Shown piece after piece: positions 55 to 61,760 of a stretch of DNA of 64,000 bases. Within the stretch, counting starts at the first letter, position 1. The number at the start of each line of letters is the position of its first letter. Source of the stretch: Utricularia gibba. Its lineage: Eukaryota; Plantae; Magnoliophyta. A program made the position numbers and the translations under genes. The notes under the pieces were generated by a model. That model did no database searches. It saw only the letters and a list, made by a program, of their open reading frames with translations, and was not told the origin of the DNA. The stretch spans positions 3,906,001-3,970,000 of the forward strand of contig CM007990.1 in NCBI GenBank assembly GCA_002189035.1, given 5' to 3'.

Positions 55-1849
55 ATTGATGAAAACGTTGCTCGCGAGATCATAAATCACCGATCACTTC
101 GACATCCCAATATAATTCGATTTAAGGAGGTGAAGTAATTCATACTGACTCAGAGCCGGTTTAATGCGACGACTAGTTGTGTTGATGTTTGTTGCTTGTT
201 TTATGAGTAGGTGGTGCTTACACCAACTCATTTAGCTATTGTTATGGAGTATGCTGCTGGTGGAGAACTTTTTGAGAGGATCTGCACTGCTGGTAGATTC
301 AGTGAAGATGAGGTAGTTTCTAAGACTTTCGGGCCTAATTTGACCGAATAAGTGATTACCTTTGGCTTTTGGGATTGCATTTTTTCATGTACTTTTTATG
401 ATTTGCACAGGCTAGGTACTTCTTTCAGCAACTTATTTGTGGAGTCAGCTACTGTCACGCCATGGTAAGAGAAGCTGATTACCTGTCCGTGAGATGTCAC
501 AGCCTGCAATATTCTGCCGAAAAATTGGGAGTATCATGCTTGCACACTCTGCGTAGCTAATGACTTTATCATTTGCAGCAAATATGCCATCGCGACTTGA
601 AACTGGAGAATACCCTTCTTGATGGAAGTCCTGCTCCACGCCTCAAAATATGCGATTTTGGATACTCAAAAGTGATGCAAATTTGCAAAATATTTTGTTT
701 TTTTGTTTATAAGTGCTCTGTTTGAACCTTGGTTTTCTTCTCTCAAGTCATCTCTACTCCACTCAAGGCCCAAGTCAACTGTAGGAACCCCTGCTTATAT
801 TGCTCCAGAGGTTCTTTCCAGAAGAGAATACGATGGGAAGGCAAGAAAGCTACTTAATTTTTTTTTTTCCTGAAATTTCACCTAAGTGTGCTACTTTAAG
901 CTTCATCCACCTTTTTGAACGCTTTTGCTGTTGTTGTTTTTTGGGGTTACTTGGATACCTCTTCGATATATTTAGCTAAGTGCTGTATGTCCGGCTTCCC
1001 CTGCTCATCTAATTTTGCTCCCAAGTACATCTCCAACTCATGAAAACTGCACCTCCTCTATGAAAATGTGATGGCTTTTCGACCTTCATCCTTCATTTTA
1101 CACCATACCTGTTTTTTCTATCCAGATGGCTGATGTTTGGTCTTGTGGCGTGACACTCTATGTTATGCTTGTTGGAGCATATCCTTTTGAAGATCAGCAA
1201 GATCCTAAGAACTTCAGGAAGACCATCCAAGCAAGTGTTTTGTTTTTCTTCCTTATCATGGCATTTCGTTCGTTCTTCTGCCTGCTTGTCTGGTCGACTT
1301 AACGTATTCATTATTTGATCTTTTCCAGAGGATAATTGCTGTTCAGTACAAGATTCCTGATTATGTCCATATATCAAAAGAGTGCAGGCACCTTCTTTCT
1401 CGGATATTTGTTGCCAGTCCAGCCAATGTATGAGAGCTGGTTTAAATTCCGGAATCACTTATCCTATTTCATGATGAAGACATGAGTCTTCCCTGTAATT
1501 CAACTCTCATGCAGAGAATCACAATCAAGGAAATCAAATCACACCCATGGTTCCTGAAGAACCTACCGAGGGAGCTAACAGAAGCAGCTCAAGCAGGATA
1601 CTACCGCAAGGAGAACCCAACCTATTCCCTCCAAACTGTAGAGGAGATCATGAAGATCGTAGAAGAGGCTAAATCTTCCTCTCCTGCCCCCGCTCACTCC
1701 GAGGATTCGGATGGGGAGCAGGAGAGGAAGAGGAAGAGTTGAAGGAAGAAGAAGAGGAGCCAGAGGACTTGGAAGAAGAAGATGATGAAGACGAGTATGA
1801 TAAGCAGGTAAAAGCTGCTCATGCCAGCGGAGAAGTGCACCTTGTGTGA
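55..1849 (+). CDS. SnRK2: SNF1-related protein kinase 2, subclass I (SnRK2.4/2.10-like); exon 1 lies outside the window; 1-bp frameshift in the last exon as sequenced
   Basis: Exons 55-129, 211-312, 411-464, 579-671, 748-840, 1126-1230, 1329-1427, 1515-1849. Sizes 75/102/54/93/93/105/99 nt match the conserved SnRK2 pattern. Motifs [62 protein letters not shown]. The acidic tail GFGWG...[20 protein letters not shown] is in a shifted frame; the unshifted frame stops at 1742. Confidence 0.95.
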
Positions 1850-2128
1850 TGGGTGCAGTGAGAACTAGTAAGTTCCTTCCTGGTTTGGTTTGCTGTTTGG
1901 TACAGACAAGTGATGCCTGTATGAGGTGTGCAATAAGTTTGTAGAGCATTTCTGTGTGTTTTGTAGCATAAGAAGCATGCGGGTTTGAAGACATCTCCTT
2001 CTTCTCGGTTTGAGGCTTCAGCAATAAGGGAATGAAATGGATGCTTGTATTGTTATCAGATTGTTTTGTTAGCCTTTTCCTCTTCAGGTGAGGCATATCC
2101 TTGCAAAATTAATAATATTTAGGGTTTA

Positions 2129-2345: not shown

Positions 2346-3879
2346 TTAGGATATATATCTCATATTATTATTATGAGACATAATAATATTTAATATCAAT
2401 GAATATGTTTAGAGTATATGTCTCATATTATTATTATAAAAAATCAATAATTTTTATTTAATTCTCTAATTTCGAAAAATAAAATATATGAGTGATTTGA
2501 TTAGAGTGGTTCTCTCATTTAAAAATATATAAATATTGATTTTTGCTAATTTAGGATAGATTATTGAGATCATTGGTGTTTTACATAATGGTTTTGTGTA
2601 AAATATTTCATTCTTTATGTATAGCTGAATATCATGGTTATGATTATTGATTTTGGATGCGAACGACCCTCAACTATGTTGCTCAAACAAATATGCAAAG
2701 AAATAATGTAAGCCCAACGTTTCTAGTGATGATATCCAACATTAATTACATAAGATGGGATGAAATGTGTTTAAATATAGAGATCTTATGATTTTTTTTT
2801 TTGAAAATGAAAAATGTAAAACCGTAATGATTAGGTTTACGAAACAGACAATTTCACATCATTAGAATGTAATTTGTAATATTTGGTATTAAGCCAAACT
2901 AGAATGTTTGCCAATGTCAAGATAGAGACCCATTTAAAATATGATAACATTATCTTATATTGATTATGAATATAAGATGATAAATATTTAAACATAAATT
3001 TCTTTCTAATATTGTATAAAATCTTTTTATCTAAACTGAATAACATGAAATTATAAAAAATGAATATTTAAAACGAATAATATCATACAAATAAAACGTG
3101 ACTTGTTATAATTAAAATGCAAAAATTATATCAAATCTATAAAAATAAAAAAATGAAAATGAAGCCCAAACATGAAAAAATCAAACATCACTTGTTTAAG
3201 AAAACTCAATAACGAAAAATATAGTTGTAAAAGCTTTGCAAAATATGTATATGTTAAAAAAACATATTTATTACACAAACGTTTATAATATATGATTATT
3301 TAAAAGCCTAACTATACATACCCAACACATCATTAATTATTTCCAATTCATGTATAATTGAATATCTCAATAATTGATATTTAAAATATAATATTTGCAT
3401 TGAAAGATATGGTGGATTCAACATTTTGTCCATTTTATATTACACTCACGACTTGGTTTTTTTATTTATTTATTAAAAATAAATAAAATTGAACTTAAAA
3501 TTGAACCGTTCTTGAATCTCGAATCGAATTCCTTTCTAATTAGGGAATCTTCTTGAGAGTCAATGTAGAGATTTAATACGTAGTCTCGTCGTCATAAAAT
3601 TGAAATTACTGAATTTGGTCGCACGAGATTTTAATTTTGCAGTGTAAATTGACAATTGAGGAGATGTCAGCGTCACCTTTGAATGCTGGAATCATCTGCG
3701 CGCGGTTCCAGGATCTATACTATGAGGACGCGTCTACATTCATCCCCTCACGCGACCACCCCCTTATTGCTTTATTTTTTCTTCTATTGCAGAGCAGGAA
3801 ACCATTTTTGTGACTCGCTTCGATTTCCAGCGGAGCTCTGGTTTCTGATCGTTGAGGAGAAGAAGAATTTACATCTCCG

Positions 3880-3987
3880 ATGAACGATTTTGCGCTGCGT
3901 ACTGAAAGTTCTCGTATCTTGGCTCCTCCCTGTAGTTGTTCTTGCGCGTGCTCCTGTTGTCGCGATCTGTCTTCCTGCATTTGTTGA
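3880..3987 (+). CDS. Cys-rich upstream ORF (35 aa) in the probable 5' leader of the SHMT gene
   Basis: ATG 3880 to TGA 3987 encodes MNDFALRTESSRILAPPCSCSCACSCCRDLSSCIC. It ends 68 nt before the SHMT ATG. Cys and Ser use mixed synonymous codons. Translation and inclusion in the transcript are not shown. Confidence 0.55.
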   Translation: MNDFALRTESSRILAPPCSCSCACSCCRDLSSCIC

Positions 3988-4055
3988 TCGTTAATTGGGA
4001 TTTGATTCTACGGAGTGGAAATTAGTGATCTTGCGATTTGGGGGGTTTTGTGGTA

Positions 4056-6302
4056 ATGGATTTGACTCATACTCGGGCGAATAATGGCGTATCATTAGGG
4101 TTTGTGTCGCATGTTTCAACGTTGCCTAGGGATGGAGGTGCGAACACTGAGGGTGGTGTTGGAATTATTTCGTTTCAAATCGAGTCGACATCTCGAGATC
4201 CCCGGCAGCCCCTGCCGTCCACACCTCTTCAGCTGTTGGACCAGCAAACGGAGGATCTGAACAAGCGAGCTGAAAAGAAATTAGATGGGGATGAGGATGT
4301 AAAGGAGGACGACGATAAGGAAGTTGAACAATTTTGCTTTTTTGGGCACTCTATGTCTCTGAAGAGGAAGCGTGCGATGGATCCGTGCCCATCTTCATCG
4401 TCTTTGTTCTCCTTTAAGATTTCTTCGTCAGATATGGATGCACGTAAGCGTGCGGTTAAAGAGTGGGGGAATTTGGGTTTGGAAAGTGCGGACCCTGAAA
4501 TTTTCTCAATCATGGAGAAGGAGAAGCATCGGCAGTTTATGGGGATTGAGTTAATTGCGTCTGAGAACTACGTATGCAAAGCTGTGATGGAAGCACTGGG
4601 TAGTCACTTGACTAATAAGTACTCTGAAGGGATGCCAGGTGCTCGATATTATGGTGGGAATGAATACATTGATGACATAGAAACTCTCTGCTGCGAACGA
4701 GCTTTGGCTGCATTTGGGCTTGATTCTGAAAGTTGGGGTGTGAATGTGCAATCATACTCGTGTACGTCTGCAAATTTCGCTGTCTATACTGGGCTTTTGC
4801 TGCCGGGGGACAGAATAATGGGTTTGGATACACCTTGTGGAGGGAATACAAGCCATGGATGCTACTTGCCTAATGGGAGGAAAGTTTCAGGTGCCTCAAT
4901 ATTTTTTGAGAGCCTGTCATACAAGGTTAATCCACAGACTGGCCTAATAGACTATGATAAACTTGAAGAACGTGCACTAGATTATCGCCCTAAGATATTG
5001 ATATGTGGCGGTAGTTCATATCCACGAGAATGGGATTATGCCAGGTTCCGGAAAATAGCGGATAAGTGTGGTGCAGTTTTGCTATGTGACATGGCTCAGA
5101 TAAGTGGCCTCGTTGTTGCAAAGGTGAAAATTTTATCCCGCAATGGTTATTTAGTTTTAGGGAAGTTACATCATGGAAGCTGTATTTTCTTTCTATCGGT
5201 TTATCTTGTTTCCAACATTTAGGATTTTTTACTTCTTCATAGTGCTCGAGTGTGAAGTCTGTTTGTCAATTAAGCTTTTGGAGGATGCAATCTATGTCTC
5301 TTGCGTAATCTTATGAGTCATCAGAATCCTAACATGAAGCATCAATGCAATACGAAAGCAGATTGCCTTTTTTAATGCTATATGCTTTTCTGAATGCAGG
5401 AGTGCGCAAGTCCTTTCGAATATTGTGATATTGTTACCTCTACCACTCATAAAAGTCTCAGAGGTCCCAGGGGAGGGATCATCTTCTACAGGAAAGGGCC
5501 AAAAGTAAAGAACAGAGGTTCACATATGAATCAAGGAGATGGCATTGAGAAATATGATTTTGAGGAAAAGATCAATTTTGCTGTTTTCCCTGCGCTTCAA
5601 GGTGGACCACACAATAACCACATTGCAGCTTTGGCCATAGCACTAAAGCAAGTTGCAACACCTGCGTTTAAGAGCTATGTAAAACAAGTTAAGAAAAATG
5701 CTGTGGCTTTAGCATCAGCTTTGTCAAGGGGAAACTGCAAGCTGGTAACGGGGGGAACTGACAATCATCTATTGATTTGGGATGTAAGAAACTTTGGGTT
5801 GACTGGTAAGGAATGCTCTAGTCGTAGTTATCCTACTTGCACCATTTCATCTTTGCAAGTGCTGTTATTTAACGATCTCCTGAATGTGCAGGAAAAACCT
5901 TAGAGAGGGTATGCGAGGTGTGCCACATCACAGTCAACAAGACTACAGTGTTTGATGACAACGGAAATATTACTCCTGGAGGCGTGAGGATTGGTACGTG
6001 AATGTTCTCTAGTCAGACACAAGCGTTTATGCTGCCCCTGTTTTGTAACTAAAAACAGATGTTCTTGCACGTGGTTAGGCACTCCTGCAATGACAACAAG
6101 AGGCTGTCTCGAAGCTGACTTTGAGGAGATTGCGAAATTTCTTCTTAGGGCTGTTCGAATTGCCATGTCCGTGCAGAGGGAACAAGGGAAATTGCCAAAA
6201 TCTTCTCCACTGGGGCTTGAGAACAACAGGGAAATCATGGAACTCCGTAGCCGAGTAGAAGCCTTCGCCTCACAGTTCGCCATGCCGGGGTTTGATGAGT
6301 AA
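4056..6302 (+). CDS. SHM7: Serine hydroxymethyltransferase, nuclear SHM6/SHM7 clade
   Basis: Exons 4056-5123, 5400-5805, 5892-5993, 6079-6302, all GT-AG. N-terminal extension [16 protein letters not shown] with a KRKR NLS-like motif. Motifs [26 protein letters not shown]-lysine motif [39 protein letters not shown]; ends [11 protein letters not shown]6 versus SHM7 orthology cannot be resolved by eye. Confidence 0.93.
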
Positions 6303-8330: not shown

Positions 8331-8647
8331 TGCATTGCATCTTCTGGTTGCTTCCCCTCACTTCAGTCGAGAAAATAGTCTTTTGCATCAGCTGTTCCCA
8401 TCTCTTGGAACAAATGAAACCATTTTGAAATGAAACTTGGAATCTTCAATTTTTTTTTTTTTTTTTGAAGAATGCTTGTTGCATTGGCGACAAAAATACT
8501 GCTATGAGACTCTCAAAAGGAAGGCGTGAGGTTAGTGGAGGGAAAGATGAAAAGGGGTGCTGCCTCAATAATGGCGGAATAAGCTGCTGTTGCTCAACAG
8601 TTGAACTTGGAGGTCACAAGCGTCGCTGTCTCCAGCGCCGCCTGAAA

Positions 8648-9424
8648 ATGAGTCACCGGAATGTTCTCCTCCTGCTACTCCTCTTGGTCTCGCTTCAGCT
8701 CGTCCTCGCCCACTACACCCACTACCCAACGACCGGAGCCGACTGGAAGGACGCACGCGCTACATTCTACGCTGCCGCAGAGCCCAGCGACGCTGTCGGA
8801 GGCGCGTGTGGATACGATGACCTCGTGAAAAATGGATATGGCAAGGCTACCGCCGCGCTCAGCTCAGTTCTGTACCAAAGGGGCCAGATCTGCGGCGCCT
8901 GCTTCGAAATCCGGTGTGTTAACGACCTAAAATGGTGTATCCCTGGCACCTCCATCATCGTAACTGCCACCAATTTCTGCCCACCCAACTACGGCTTCGA
9001 GGCCGACGGCGGTGGCCGGTGCAACCCACCTAACGCCCATTTCGTTCTCCCCATCGAAGCATTCGAGAAGATCGCTATCTGGAAGGCATCGAATATGCCT
9101 GTCCAGTACCGGAGAATCAATTGCAGAAAAGACGGGGGCATCCGATTCACCATCTCCGGCGCCGGAATATTCCTATCGGTGCTAATTAGCAACGTGGGTG
9201 GCCCCGGAGACATCACCGCCGTGAAAATCAAGGGTTCCCGAACCGGGTGGCTGCCGATGGGTAGAAATTGGGGGCAAATCTGGCACGTAAACGCCGACCT
9301 GAAGAATCAGCCCCTATCGTTCGAAGTCACCGCCAGCGACGGCGTTACCCTGCCGTCGTACAACGTCGCACCCAAGAACTGGGAATTTGGGCAATCTTTT
9401 GAAGGTAAACAATTTGAATCCTAA
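8648..9424 (+). CDS. EXPA13: Alpha-expansin, EXPA13 clade, single exon (258 aa)
   Basis: Signal peptide MSHRNVLLLLLLLVSLQLVLA. DPBB domain with ATFY, GGACGY, CGACFEIRC, TATNFCPPN and the HFV variant of the HFD motif typical of this clade. C-terminal CBM63 domain with MGRNWGQIW. The ORF is uninterrupted. Confidence 0.93.
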   Translation: MSHRNVLLLLLLLVSLQLVLAHYTHYPTTGADWKDARATFYAAAEPSDAVGGACGYDDLVKNGYGKATAALSSVLYQRGQICGACFEIRCVNDLKWCIPGTSIIVTATNFCPPNYGFEADGGGRCNPPNAHFVLPIEAFEKIAIWKASNMPVQYRRINCRKDGGIRFTISGAGIFLSVLISNVGGPGDITAVKIKGSRTGWLPMGRNWGQIWHVNADLKNQPLSFEVTASDGVTLPSYNVAPKNWEFGQSFEGKQFES

Positions 9425-45529: not shown

Positions 45530-45730
45530 TGAGGTTATTTGATATATAATATAGAAGATTTATATTCAAAATTACAAATAAATCACTATTTGATTAATTA
45601 ACATATGCATACTAGAGTTGTATGACTATATAATTCACAATGAAATAGTAGGCCCACACCTAGTGGGATCGTTATCTAAATATGTGATGGTAAGCGAGTT
45701 AGCTTGTACCGGGAGCCATCATTGACGGAA

Positions 45731-47254
45731 ATGGAGTTCTCTTCCGTCAGCATCACCTTCCTCGTCATTCTCGTCTCGGGTATCTCTGCATACCTTTTAC
45801 TTTTCCAGCGGAAAGGTTCCGGCCATGGGTTCAAAACAGTTCCTTTATTGGGGTCCCTTCCGGACTTCCTTCGCAACCGCCACCGCTTCCTCGACTGGGT
45901 CACCGAAACTGTTGCTCATACACCGGGGAATACCGCCGTCTTCACCATTCCCGGGAACACCCAAGGCATCTTGACTGCAAATCCACAAGTTGTGGAGTAC
46001 ATATTGAAAACCAATTTCGAGGATTACCCAAAGGGGTCTTATTTAATTTCCGCTTTGCATGATTTGCTGGGGAGTGGGATCTTCAACGTGGATGGAGATT
46101 CATGGAAGGCTCAGAGGAAGACTGCGAGTTATGAGTTCAACACGAAATCTCTCAGGAATTTTGTGATGGAATGTGTGGCCTCTGAATCGGAATCGCAGCT
46201 GATTCCACTGATGGAATCCGCCGCTAAAAGCGGCAACGTTTTGGATCTTCAGGACATTCTCGAACGATTTTCTTTCGACAATATTTGCAGACTTTCTTTC
46301 AACGTCGACCCTGGTTGCCTTGAAGGTGACAGCTCTGTTGGGGCGGAGTTTATGCGGGCATTTGATGAAGCTGCCCTGCTCAGTTCGGGTAGATTTTATT
46401 CTGCTATCCCGATTCTAGTGACGATCAAGAAGTTTCTCGATGTGGGATCGGAGAAGAAGCTGCGCAAATCCGTTGCTACTGTCCATGATTTCGCTGACAA
46501 GATCATCAGAAAAAGAATGGAAGAAAAGAGGGAAACTGTTATTAAAGAGGATGAGGACTTACTGTCAAGATTCATAACCCAAAAGGAAGCCTCACCTCAG
46601 TATCTCAGAGATATCGTCATCAGCTTCATTCTAGCAGGGAGAGACACTTCCTCCGCTGCTCTTACGTGGTTCTTCTGGATGCTATCTACCCACCCACATG
46701 TCGAACAAAAGATCCTGCAAGAACTAGCCGAAATCCGAAGCCGAAACCGCAAACCAATCGGCGAGGTCTACACCTTCGATGAGCTTCGCGATATGCATTA
46801 TCTCCATGCGTCAATCACGGAATCAATGAGACTTTATCCTCCAGTCCCAGCAGACTCAAAGACGTGCGCGAGAGACGACATTCTCCCTGATGGGACTGTG
46901 GTACGCAAGGGCTGGTTCGTTTCATACCTTGCATACTCAATGGGAAGGATGGAGAACATTTGGGGCAAAGATTGCTGCGAGTACAAGCCGGAGAGATGGA
47001 TCGAGAACGGCGTTTTCCGGCAGGAGAGCTCGTTCAAGTATCCGGTTTTCCACGCCGGACCAAGGATCTGTCTGGGGAAGGACATGGCCTATATTCAGAT
47101 GAAGTCCATCGCAGCTTCTGTGTTGGAAAGGTTTGCTTTGAATGTATTGGTGGAGAAAGGCAAGTCACCTGAACCCCTCTTATCTTTGACTATGAAAGTG
47201 AAAGGTGGACTGCAGGTCATCGTGAAGGAAAGAGAAGCTCCCAGTAGTTTCTAA
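45731..47254 (+). CDS. CYP94: Cytochrome P450 CYP94 family (CYP94D-like), copy 1, 507 aa, intronless
   Basis: N-terminal TM helix, LLGSGIFNVDG, I-helix AGRDTS, ESMRLYPPVP, PERW and heme motif FHAGPRICLG. Start at 45731 by alignment with copy 2. Confidence 0.93.
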   Translation: MEFSSVSITFLVILVSGISAYLLLFQRKGSGHGFKTVPLLGSLPDFLRNRHRFLDWVTETVAHTPGNTAVFTIPGNTQGILTANPQVVEYILKTNFEDYPKGSYLISALHDLLGSGIFNVDGDSWKAQRKTASYEFNTKSLRNFVMECVASESESQLIPLMESAAKSGNVLDLQDILERFSFDNICRLSFNVDPGCLEGDSSVGAEFMRAFDEAALLSSGRFYSAIPILVTIKKFLDVGSEKKLRKSVATVHDFADKIIRKRMEEKRETVIKEDEDLLSRFITQKEASPQYLRDIVISFILAGRDTSSAALTWFFWMLSTHPHVEQKILQELAEIRSRNRKPIGEVYTFDELRDMHYLHASITESMRLYPPVPADSKTCARDDILPDGTVVRKGWFVSYLAYSMGRMENIWGKDCCEYKPERWIENGVFRQESSFKYPVFHAGPRICLGKDMAYIQMKSIAASVLERFALNVLVEKGKSPEPLLSLTMKVKGGLQVIVKEREAPSSF

Positions 47255-48429
47255 GGCATTTTGTCGCCATGAACAAAATTTGTGTGGTCGTTAAAAATTC
47301 TCTATCTTGTTTGTGATATGGTGTAACTCGTGTTGTGATACCCTATCAAGTAATGTATTTGATTCATGATATACTTTTATTTCAGATAATAAAATTTAAA
47401 TTAGTTATTAATGAAAACAATATATAAATAATATTAACGATATATTAATTTCATATAGCTAATTTTCAAAAAAAATTAATGTTGATATAATTCGATAATA
47501 AGACACTATTTCCACTATTTAAATACTCCATAATAGATTCTTACCATTTTAAAGATTGATGTTTTTGGTTTACCATTATACAAATGATATAAATTATTCA
47601 TTTTGTTTCTTATAACTGATATAGATAGTTATCAACTGTTTTTCATTATAATAAAATTAGTTTATAATATAAAATTCTAATTTCTATTCATAATAGCTTA
47701 CTAACTCATTTCAACTCTTTCCACCATACCCCTACCACGATTAGGAAATAAAGAAACAAAGATTATGTTTTGAATTGAACTAGTTCTTACATATAACACA
47801 TTGTAAACGAATATATTGTCAAAATAGTCAGATTGATTTTGGAGAAAAATATTATAATTAAAGTGAAAGTTATCTAGATATTCACCAAGAGGGATATAAA
47901 ATTTATAGTATTGTATTATCGAATATAGTATAATTTAATTTATGAAAACCTTTCAAATTTGTCTATGATACATTTGAGATTTTGATAACATTGCTACCCA
48001 CCTTAATATAATAACTTTATATGCAAATCCTGAAATTTTTATTACAAACACATAGAAACTAATTTTTTCAACATTAAGATACCAAAATATGTATTTTGAG
48101 CATTTGAATTATATATTCATGCTCATTTGCAATATTCAACATGTGATCATAATAGATGTCACATATTTTTCTTTTATCCTGAATCACAAGTTATTAATTA
48201 TTGTAATTGTAAATGTTTGTGACCTTCTTCACATAAACATATTTTCACTGACTAAATACATAAAAAGAAACTATTAAACGTGTAAACTAGTAGAAATATA
48301 AGGATGATGTGGTTTTAGGGTTTGCTACATAGCTTATAATTTTGTATATTAGCTTTCGTTTTTAATATTCCTTGGATAGAGATAAGGGAGGAAGCGAATA
48401 GTGTTACAATTCAGATCCTTGATTCAGAG

Positions 48430-58124: not shown

Positions 58125-61100
58125 TTGTTAGGAAATTATTTGGGATTATATGAATAAAAAAATAATTATTTGAAATTATTTTAACAAAATTACATATATT
58201 TTTCAATCAAATATAATAATATTTTATTTATGTCTTTTATAACAGAATAATAAAATAAACATATAATACGCAATGAATGCTTGGTACATGATATTAAATG
58301 AAAAATAGTAAGTTATATTAAGATCTCAATTTTATTACGCCAAATAAGATTTATCAATGATAAATGGGTTTATATACCCATTGTTTAATTGATATTTTTA
58401 CTCCCATTCATTTTCTAGTTATATTAAAAAATGAAGATAATATAATTATTTTTATATGATTAAAATTTCTAAATACAATTTTATTAATAGTTTCACTTAA
58501 TTAACCAAACATATCTAATCTTATTCATATATTTATATTTTATTTACATATCTCTATTAAAAGATCTATCAGTATATTTTAATCTCACTAAATACATACT
58601 ACTTAACTCTAAATAAGAAAGTTATAATACATTACATGAATGATCTGAAATTCTTCTTTTTTTACAAATTTTAAATACTTGTAATTATATCGAACCATGC
58701 CCCATACAGATTATAATTGCGAAAGAATGATCATCAACTTTGTTTTAAATTTTAGGTCATGGGTTTTTAGTTTATGAAAGTGTTTAATAGTATATTATAA
58801 AAAAAATTATATTCAAATTTACATATAAATCACTATTTAATTAAGTAATCTATGTACAGTAAACTTGTATTATTATACAACTCACATAATCATTTTTTGA
58901 ATATAAGGATGATATATACAAATGCAAGAAGAAAGAATGTATATTGCTCACATACGTAGATTGCTAATATTGAATATTAAAATATTATATATATATATAT
59001 ATTCAATTATACTATATTTGAATATACTAATATAAATAACCTATGTGAATCTAATGAATCTCATGGCTTCCTTGGCGATGTCAGTTTGAGCACCAGGATA
59101 ATATCATTTATTGCACCTTCGTCGAAGTAAATGAATTGGAATAAAATAAAATAAAATATGAAAATTTGGAAGCGAAAACCAAATCGTCTTCCAGTTTCTT
59201 GCACCTTTTCCCAAGAAAAGAGTAGGTCCCCATTTAGTTGGATCGTTCTTTAAATATGTGATGGTAAGCGAGTGAGCTTCCACCAGAAGTCATCATTGCT
59301 AAACAGAAATGGAGTTCTCTTCCGTCAGCATCACCATCCTCGTCATTCTCGTCTCTAGTTTGTCGGCATACCTTCTACTTTTCCGGCGGAAAGGTTCCGG
59401 CCATGGGTTCAAAACAGTTCCTTTATTGGGGGCCCTCCCGGACTTCCTTCGCAACCGCCACCGCTTCCTCGACTGGGTCACCGAAACTGTTGCCGATACG
59501 CCGGGGAATACCGCCGCCTTCACCATTCCCGGGAACACCCAAGGCATCGTGACAGCGAATCCGCAAGTTGTGGAGTACATACTGAAAGCCAACTTCGAGG
59601 ATTACCCAAAGGGCTCTTATTTCATTTCCGCTTTGCATGATTTGCTGGGGAGTGGGATCTTCAACGTGGATGGAAACTCATGGAAGGTTCAGAGGAAGAC
59701 TGCGAGTTATGAGTTTAACACGAAATCTCTCAGGAATTTTGTGATGGAATGTGTGGCCTCTGAATTGGAATCCCGGCTGATTCCACTGATCGAATCCGCC
59801 GCTAAAAGCGGCAACGTTTTGGATCTTCAGGACATTCTCGAACGATTTGCTTTCGACAATATATGCAGACTTTCTTTCAACGTCGACCCTGGTTGCCTTG
59901 AAGGTGACAGCTCTGTTGGGGCGGAGTTTATGCGGGCATTTGATGAAGCTGCCCTGCTCAGTTCGGGTAGATTTTTGTCTGCTTTCTCGTTTCTAGTGAC
60001 GACCAAGAAGTTTCTCGATGTGGGATCGGAGAAGAAGCTGCGCAAATCCGTTGCTACTGTCCATGATTTCGCTGACAAGATCATCAGAAAAAGAATGGAA
60101 GAAAAGAGGGAAACTGTTATTAAAGAGGATGAGGACTTACTGTCAAGATTCATAACGCAAAAGGAAGCCTCACCTCAGTATCTCAGAGATATCGTCATCA
60201 GCTTCATTCTAGCAGGGAGAGACACTACCTCCGCTGCTCTTACGTGGTTCTTCTGGCTGCTATCTACCCACCCACATGTCGAACAAAAGATCCTGCAAGA
60301 ACTAGCCGAAATCCGAAGCCGAAACGGCAAACCAGTCGGCGAGGTCTACACCTTCGATGAGCTTCGCGATATGCATTATCTCCATGCGTCAATCACGGAA
60401 TCAATGAGACTGTATCCTCCAGTTCCAGCAGACTCAAAGACGTGCGCGAAAGACGACATTCTCCCTGATGGGACTGTGATACGCAAGGGCTGGTTCGTTA
60501 CATACTTTGCATACTCAATGGGAAGGATGGAGAACATTTGGGGTAAAGATTGCCGCGAGTACAAGCCGGAGAGATGGATCGAGAACGGCGTTTTCAAGCA
60601 GGAAAGCTCGTTCAAGTTTCCGGTTTTCCACGCCGGACCAAGGATCTGTCTGGGGAAGGACATGGCCTACATTCAGATGAAGTCTATCGCAGCTTCTGTG
60701 TTGGAGAGGTTTGCTTTGAATGTTTTGGTGGAGAAAGGCAAGTCCCCTGAAGGCCTCTTATCCTTGACTCTCAGAGTGAAAGGTGGGCTGCAGGTCACAG
60801 TGAAGGAAAGGGAAGCTCCCAGCAGTTTCTAAGGCATTTTGGCGCGATGAATAAAATTTGTGTGGTTGTTAAGAATTCTATGACTTGTTTGTAACTCGTG
60901 TTGTGGTACCCTATCAAGTAATGTCTTTGATGCGTGGTATATTTTTATTTTAGATAATTATTTAAGTTAATTATTAATAAAAAAAATATAAATAATATTA
61001 ACTCCATATTACTTTCGTATAATTAATTGTTAAAAAACTAATGTTTGACATTATTTGATAACAAGACACTATTTCCACTATTCCAATACTCCATGATAGA

Positions 61101-61760
61101 TTCTTACCATTTTAAATGTTGATAGTTTACCATTATACAAGTGATATAAATAATTCGTATTGTTTCTTATAACTGATTTAGATAGCTATCAATTTTTTTT
61201 CATTATAGTAAAATTAGTTTATACTATGAAATTCTAATTTCTATTCATAATATTTTTCTAACTCATTTCAACTCTTTCCACCATGCCCCTACCAGGATTA
61301 TGAAATGAAGAAACAAAGATTGTGTTTTGAATTAAACTTCTACTTATGTAGAAATATTGCAAATGAATACATAATCGAAATAGTTAGATTGCTTTTGGAG
61401 AAAAATATTACAATTAAAGTGAAAGTCATCTAGATATTCATTAGTAAGGATATTGGATTTATAATATCATATATATGAAAATCATTAGAATTTATGTACA
61501 ATACATTTGAGATTTTAGTAACATTGCTACCCATCTTACTACAATAAGCTTATATACAAAATCCTAAAATTATTATCATATGAAAATACATAAAACTAAT
61601 TTTTCCAACAGTAAAACACTCAAGTATGTATTTTGGATTTTTGAATCATGTATTCAAGGTTATTACATAATTCTAAATGTGATCACAATATATGTTGTAC
61701 CTTTTTATTTTAAGTTGAACCACACATTATTGATTGTTATAACTATACATATTTGTAACC
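58125..61760 (+). repeat. Tandem duplication unit C (CYP94 copy 2 with flanks); upstream similarity to unit A extends to about 57620
   Basis: Aligns with unit B across promoter, CDS and 3' flank, with a private insertion of about 335 bp at about 58890-59220. Confidence 0.85.
59309..60832 (+). CDS. CYP94: Cytochrome P450 CYP94 family (CYP94D-like), copy 2, 507 aa, intronless
   Basis: Same motifs as copy 1 (AGRDTT, ESMRLYPPVP, PERW, FHAGPRICLG). About 93% amino-acid identity to copy 1 by manual alignment. Confidence 0.93.
   Translation: MEFSSVSITILVILVSSLSAYLLLFRRKGSGHGFKTVPLLGALPDFLRNRHRFLDWVTETVADTPGNTAAFTIPGNTQGIVTANPQVVEYILKANFEDYPKGSYFISALHDLLGSGIFNVDGNSWKVQRKTASYEFNTKSLRNFVMECVASELESRLIPLIESAAKSGNVLDLQDILERFAFDNICRLSFNVDPGCLEGDSSVGAEFMRAFDEAALLSSGRFLSAFSFLVTTKKFLDVGSEKKLRKSVATVHDFADKIIRKRMEEKRETVIKEDEDLLSRFITQKEASPQYLRDIVISFILAGRDTTSAALTWFFWLLSTHPHVEQKILQELAEIRSRNGKPVGEVYTFDELRDMHYLHASITESMRLYPPVPADSKTCAKDDILPDGTVIRKGWFVTYFAYSMGRMENIWGKDCREYKPERWIENGVFKQESSFKFPVFHAGPRICLGKDMAYIQMKSIAASVLERFALNVLVEKGKSPEGLLSLTLRVKGGLQVTVKEREAPSSF

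Follow-up and report, generated by a model that had tools for sequence, protein, structure and literature searches.

A cysteine-rich first-AUG uORF in the SHM6/7 leader of Utricularia gibba: a diverged lamiid member of HG65 and probable translational attenuator

The 64 kb stretch of Utricularia gibba DNA analyzed here (the window) harbors a gene for a serine hydroxymethyltransferase (SHMT) of the SHM6/7 type, the main ORF of which finds its best matches in Lamiales proteins named SHM7/SHM6 (PF00464, up to 74% identity), while no Arabidopsis protein is present among the 120 matches listed for it. The main ATG stands in a strong context, with G at both -3 and +4. The original prediction placed this gene in the setting of sulfur deficiency and the OAS cluster, and the literature agrees, describing SHM7/MSA1 as a SLIM1-dependent OAS-cluster gene that is induced by sulfur deficiency (PMC10243980, PMC9573389). 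It is one of the six core genes of the cluster and exerts feedback on sulfur uptake by way of SAM and methylation. Downstream, the SHMT gene is followed next by a long ORF on the plus strand (8465-9424), whose C-terminal two thirds look, by eye, like an alpha-expansin with the motifs GGACGY and CGACFE. Elsewhere in the window, two copies of ~2 kb (45725-47796 and 59303-61353), which are 88-93% alike and lie 13.6 kb apart, may be the LTRs of a large retrotransposon or the outcome of a segmental duplication.

The transcript of the SHMT gene is documented by contigs assembled from four public RNA runs over the region. Contig X1 begins at 3771 and contigs X2 and X3 at 3797; all three span the uORF without differences and without a joint, leave the genome at 5124, and continue with sequence near 5401. 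Since these contigs are spliced at 5124, they represent mRNA with an unspliced leader, and since they run unbroken through 3880-3987, the uORF is part of the mature leader. The original prediction, which depended on a transcription start upstream of 3880 and on the region not being spliced out, is borne out on both points. Within 350 nt before the main ATG, only two ATGs occur, one at -334, which is upstream of the contig starts, and the other at -176, which opens the uORF. Contig X5, which derives from another accession and displays four single-base differences and one inserted G relative to the window over this stretch, begins at 4004, i.e., 17 nt past the uORF stop, and is silent on the uORF; either the assembly stops short of the true 5' end, or transcription may also begin at a second site and so leave the uORF out. 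Additionally, the run of six G at 4040-4045 carries one extra G in all four RNA runs, which lengthens the spacer from 68 to 69 nt and is either a homopolymer error of the assembly or a polymorphism.

The translation of the uORF agrees exactly with the originally predicted ORF, which has 35 codons, carries 8 Cys among its 18 C-terminal residues, and ends 68 nt ahead of the SHMT ATG (Table 1). The 8 Cys, none of which lies outside these 18 residues, are encoded by five TGT and three TGC codons, and the Ser residues by AGT, TCT, and TCC; these counts match the mixed codon usage that was claimed at the outset. When the TGY codons of the uORF are counted by frame, 8 are found in the frame of the uORF and 2 and 1 in the other two. 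The start context of the uORF is weak, with C at -3 and A at +4.

Table 1. Features of the SHM6/7 leader in the Utricularia gibba window and uORFs at the corresponding place in the compared leaders, each numbered within its own sequence.
Feature	Position	Strand	Description
Candidate promoter motif GTCTACATTCATCCCC	3732-3747	+	degenerate counterpart of GTCCAG[GA]TNCAT[CT]CC
5' leader upstream of uORF	3771-3879	+	from contig 5' ends; without other ATG
uORF	3880-3987	+	ATG, 35 codons, TGA stop; sole (and first) AUG in the mRNA leader
Cys-rich C-terminal half of uORF	3931-3984	+	8 Cys among 18 codons; reaches the stop codon
Spacer, uORF stop to main ATG	3988-4055	+	68 nt in the window assembly
Exon 1, SHM6/7-type SHMT main ORF	4056-5124	+	splice donor ~5124
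L001 Sesamum, uORF	2801-2917		7 Cys
L002 Paulownia, uORF	2785-2889		8 Cys
L003 transcript contig, uORF	193-285		7 Cys
L004 Olea, uORF	2801-2908		9 Cys
L005 Coffea, uORF	2783-2893		10 Cys
L006 Solanum, uORF	2839-2922		11 Cys
L007 Prosopis (legume), uORF	2806-2895		5 Cys
L008 Paulownia paralogue, uORF	2797-2868		5 Cys
L009 Camellia, uORF	2850-2957		7 Cys
L010 Lithospermum, uORF	1858-1920		4 Cys
L011 Lonicera, uORF	2815-2925		10 Cys

A short Cys-rich frame might arise by chance in a leader whose base composition is rich in T and G. Of the dinucleotide-preserving shuffles of the leader (3771-4055, n = 5000), 0.16% yielded an ATG-initiated ORF carrying 8 Cys or more, and shuffling of the uORF body alone gave at least 8 Cys in the ATG frame in 0.46%. 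The two strands of the window together hold 502 ORFs of 20-60 aa that begin with ATG; the uORF is the sole one with 8 Cys, followed by one ORF with 7 and one with 6. The shuffles and this census rule out a chance ORF from the T/G-rich leader. Tandem Repeats Finder reported no tandem repeat in 3700-4100, and microsatellite slippage is ruled out in the absence of such a repeat. Likewise, the leader folds less stably than its own shuffles (z = +1.73), which rules out a conserved RNA structure.

Eleven leaders around SHM6/7 orthologues and paralogues, retrieved through protein matches of the main ORF, were compared with that of the window. An ATG uORF with 4-11 Cys is present at the corresponding place in all 11, and in most of them its ATG is the sole upstream ATG. 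The densest TGY stretch is in the frame of the uORF ATG at each of the 10 loci tested, the window included, and the last Cys lies no more than 5 residues from the stop in every compared uORF as well as in three published peptides of the same type, which are discussed below. In seven relatives, the uORF has 27-38 codons and the spacer 57-111 nt; over all relatives, the uORF length is 20-38 codons. Most relatives share an ME(A/V/T)S start, from which the N-terminus of the window uORF differs. In protein-guided codon alignments, pN is lower than pS in every pair printed, a relation that can be stated although a dN/dS value cannot, since comparisons between orders have reached saturation at synonymous positions. 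TGT in one sequence faces TGC in the other at roughly half of the Cys-Cys columns of these pairwise alignments. Such interchange with retention of Cys fits a constraint on the peptide or on its codons and not slippage, as had been argued from the window sequence. The expectation that the peptide is conserved in orthologous leaders holds in part: in-frame Cys-richness is shared by lamiids, other asterids, and a legume, while no significant similarity in residue order was obtained for the window peptide (profile score -2.7 bits).

Two of the relatives deserve separate mention. In the Paulownia paralogue, the uORF is stopped at 23 codons by an in-frame TGA, and the codons past it read I-C-C-R-V-C-stop, as does, approximately, the C-terminus of the uORF in the second Paulownia copy, so that one of the two paralogues seems to have been truncated recently. 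In Lithospermum, the uORF has only 20 codons and 4 Cys and is an exception in its spacing to the main ATG, from which it is separated by a tandem array of ~60 nt units extending over several hundred nt (uORF and array together within 1858-2539); either an intron in the leader or an inserted minisatellite may explain the array.

The original prediction left it to published CPuORF lists to settle whether this uORF was already catalogued, and the family proves to be on record as HG65, a homology group of the ESUCA catalogue (Takahashi et al. 2020, BMC Genomics 21:260; PMC7106846); the novelty of the uORF family itself is therefore settled against. The HG65 entries in Table S1 of that study comprise one poplar and two grape uORFs ahead of serine hydroxymethyltransferase genes, the tails of which follow the pattern C-x-C-[FL]-[KR]-R-x-C-[RH]-C-F-C-C; their uORF-mORF fusion ratios are 0.12-0.18, and their median Ka/Ks values 0.047-0.20. 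The string CFCC is limited to these three entries among all peptides of Table S1. The orders recorded for HG65 in Table S2 include one non-lamiid asterid, one malvid, and one or two fabid orders, but no lamiids, and neither Arabidopsis nor tomato has an HG65 entry (PMC7106846). The words "cysteine" and "Cys" are absent from the main text of the study, which does not bring up sulfur either (PMC7106846).

HG65 is found in the leader of SHM6/7-type genes across core eudicots. The window uORF resembles the catalogued members in its SHM6/7-type SHMT host, its place in the leader, its AUG start, its Cys-rich C-terminal half near the stop, and its length (35 aa versus 33-39 aa); however, it has neither the residue order of the rosid/grape consensus nor the ME start. 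For the comparison of order, R-Y-C-x-C-x-[FL]-[KR]-R-x-C-[RH]-C-F-C-C was used as the consensus. The uORFs of Camellia and Lonicera match the grape HG65 peptides closely, whereas the lamiid uORFs keep the Cys density and little of the residue order. Against a profile of 12 other peptides, the window peptide reaches -2.7 bits, a score that 15.8% of composition-matched shuffles equal or exceed and that some unrelated ORFs of the window also attain or surpass, in a test that has low power on a Cys-rich peptide because HMMER penalizes biased composition. Given this non-significant score, membership of the window uORF in HG65 follows from position and composition and not from residue order, and on that basis it is filed as a new, diverged lamiid member. 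HG65-type uORFs are seen in Lamiales, Gentianales, and Solanales and are reduced in Boraginales, which extends the group to the lamiids, for which ESUCA recorded none. The lamiid uORFs thereby bring in tractable test species, namely potato/tomato relatives, coffee, olive, and sesame.

The functional record of HG65 comes from the ESUCA study, in which the poplar leader was assayed in a luciferase construct against a compensated frameshift that replaces every Cys (PMC7106846). Sequence-dependent repression was observed for five of the 11 poplar CPuORFs in this protoplast assay; for three of the five, conservation reaches outside the eudicots, and a fourth is HG107 (PMC7106846). With those four accounted for, at most one of HG65, HG80, HG81, HG87, and HG88 was positive, and HG65 may thus show no effect under standard conditions.

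We propose that the uORF of the window is probably a Lamiales member of HG65 that acts in cis as a translational attenuator of SHM6/7. Its Cys-rich C-terminal half appears to be kept by selection in the reading frame of the uORF. In a plant cytosolic mRNA, any effect of a uORF must be exerted via scanning, stalling, or reinitiation. Under the scanning model, some ribosomes would initiate at the uAUG despite its weak context, pass through the Cys codons, and be released 68 nt ahead of the main AUG, so that synthesis of SHM6/7 would rely on reinitiation and on leaky scanning. As known for other CPuORFs with a regulatory role, the time that ribosomes spend on the uORF is probably tuned by its conserved Cys-rich tail. 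The weakness of the uAUG context implies that many ribosomes may bypass the uORF.

Upstream of the uORF, the motif GTCCAG[GA]TNCAT[CT]CC occurs in nine of the compared loci (L002-L009 and L011) and is degenerate in Sesamum; it is often followed by TCGTCAA..CCACGC and a TATA-like stretch. The distance to the uATG is 148 nt in the window and 143-216 nt in the orthologues, and the window copy, with two mismatches, is by itself not above chance. The motif core GTCCAGGTTCA is shared with the reverse complement of the SLIM1 UPE-box (UPE-box sequence from PMC9573389), while the exact UPE-box half TGTCCAGGTTCA is absent from a set of nine loci examined for it, where the best matches reach 11/12. The conservation of the motif and its likeness to the UPE-box suggest that control of SHM6/7 transcription by sulfur deficiency may be conserved across eudicots.

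Several other readings of the uORF have to be weighed against attenuation in cis. It might be a decaying relic in Utricularia gibba, a family feature that is kept elsewhere and has drifted here with little effect; the weak start context, the N-terminus unlike ME(A/V/T)S, and the non-significant profile score would agree with this, as would the decay in relatives, i.e., the in-frame TGA of the Paulownia paralogue and the 4 Cys and long repeat before the main ATG in Lithospermum. Nevertheless, the uORF still carries 8 Cys within 18 codons, its ATG and stop are intact, and its spacing is typical, and drift would not be expected to hold such features at a shuffle probability of ~0.002, which makes a relic improbable. 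It is more improbable still that the uORF encodes a free-standing Cys-rich micropeptide with a metal-binding or redox function, the conservation of which would reflect its own role and not regulation of the main ORF. Motifs such as CxC and CC are indeed reminiscent of ligands of the metallothionein type, and the ESUCA authors note that CPuORFs without an effect in cis may encode otherwise functional peptides (PMC7106846); however, the peptides vary in length (20-39 residues) and in Cys spacing, the uORF never occurs apart from this one type of host gene, and no sign of a small protein turned up. A T- and G-rich leader would suit a conserved element at the level of nucleic acid, whether a DNA element close to the promoter or an RNA motif rich in U and G, to which the ORF is incidental. 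Such an element would leave unexplained why ATG and TGY run share one frame at 10 of 10 loci and why the third positions of the Cys codons vary freely, and the leader contains neither a stable fold nor a repeat. We consider this reading extremely improbable.

A narrower version of attenuation in cis, in which SHM6/7 translation follows cysteine supply, is coherent but on balance unlikely to be correct. Transit across the uORF would be set by charged tRNA-Cys, or a thiol-rich nascent chain would respond to redox state or metals; at low cysteine, slow transit would block scanning and cut reinitiation, with the consequence that the transcripts that accumulate under sulfur deficiency would, for the most part, be translated after cysteine returns. 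A sensor based on a codon run or on composition predicts that Cys density is kept with free exchange of TGT and TGC, and this is the pattern in lamiids, which keep density over residue order. The host family includes the SLIM1-driven OAS-cluster gene SHM7/MSA1, a UPE-box-like promoter motif is kept beside the uORF in the orthologues, CFCC is restricted to HG65 among the Table S1 peptides of ESUCA, and a prokaryotic precedent is provided by mycobacterial poly-Cys leaders (10.1101/834739). Conversely, the specific order R-Y-C-x-C ... C-R-C-F-C-C-C is kept in rosids, grape, Camellia, and Lonicera, and the Cys run is always near the stop, which a sensor of tRNA supply would not need; a defined order together with a fixed closeness of Cys to the stop points more to an effect of the nascent peptide at termination. 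The activity of the Arabidopsis MSA1 promoter-GUS fusion rises under sulfur deficiency (PMC5021336). Furthermore, the predicted direction of control is opposite to that of transcriptional induction.

The broader form of the same idea, that across core eudicots the HG65 uORF serves as a gauge of cysteine or thiol supply that gates synthesis of a nuclear regulator of sulfur homeostasis of the SHM7/MSA1 type, is likewise unlikely in our view. The steps that lead from sulfur sensing to SLIM1 activation are described as unknown in reviews (PMC4206189, PMC9062327). If the idea were true, the uORF would be to eukaryotes what amino-acid leader peptides are to bacteria, and it could be the sensor of sulfur status that is still missing in plants. 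No mention of uORFs together with plant SHM7/MSA1/AT1G36370 was found in the literature searched, and Arabidopsis SHM7/SHM6 has no entry in the supplements of two Arabidopsis uORF papers. A uORF that consists largely of Cys codons and is kept ahead of this gene family from grape to Lamiales is an obvious candidate for linking translation to the supply of cysteine, and one that seems not to have been discussed; this link is put forward as a coherent, apparently unpublished hypothesis and not as a result.

The proposed attenuator invites comparison with two kinds of known systems. In mycobacteria, attenuation in response to cysteine is exerted by poly-Cys leader ORFs, in agreement with the original prediction (10.1101/834739). 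As described there, they are likewise short, packed with Cys codons, and located upstream of sulfur-related genes; however, they are leaderless ORFs in an operon with polycistronic coupling, whereas the uORF of the window lies in a spliced nuclear plant mRNA. Measured against amino-acid leader attenuators of this mycobacterial type, the codon run is present here (8 Cys in 18 codons) and the operon setting is not; the uORF is not classed with them, and at most a similar way of working would be shared. The metabolite-responsive CPuORFs of plants, which include those responding to sucrose (S1-bZIP), polyamines (AdoMetDC), and phosphocholine (PMC3426882, PMC7106846), are alike in being conserved peptide uORFs whose C-terminal part adjoins the stop and in standing ahead of a metabolic or regulatory gene. 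These CPuORFs keep a defined order of residues, whereas the HG65-type uORFs of lamiids keep mainly their composition.
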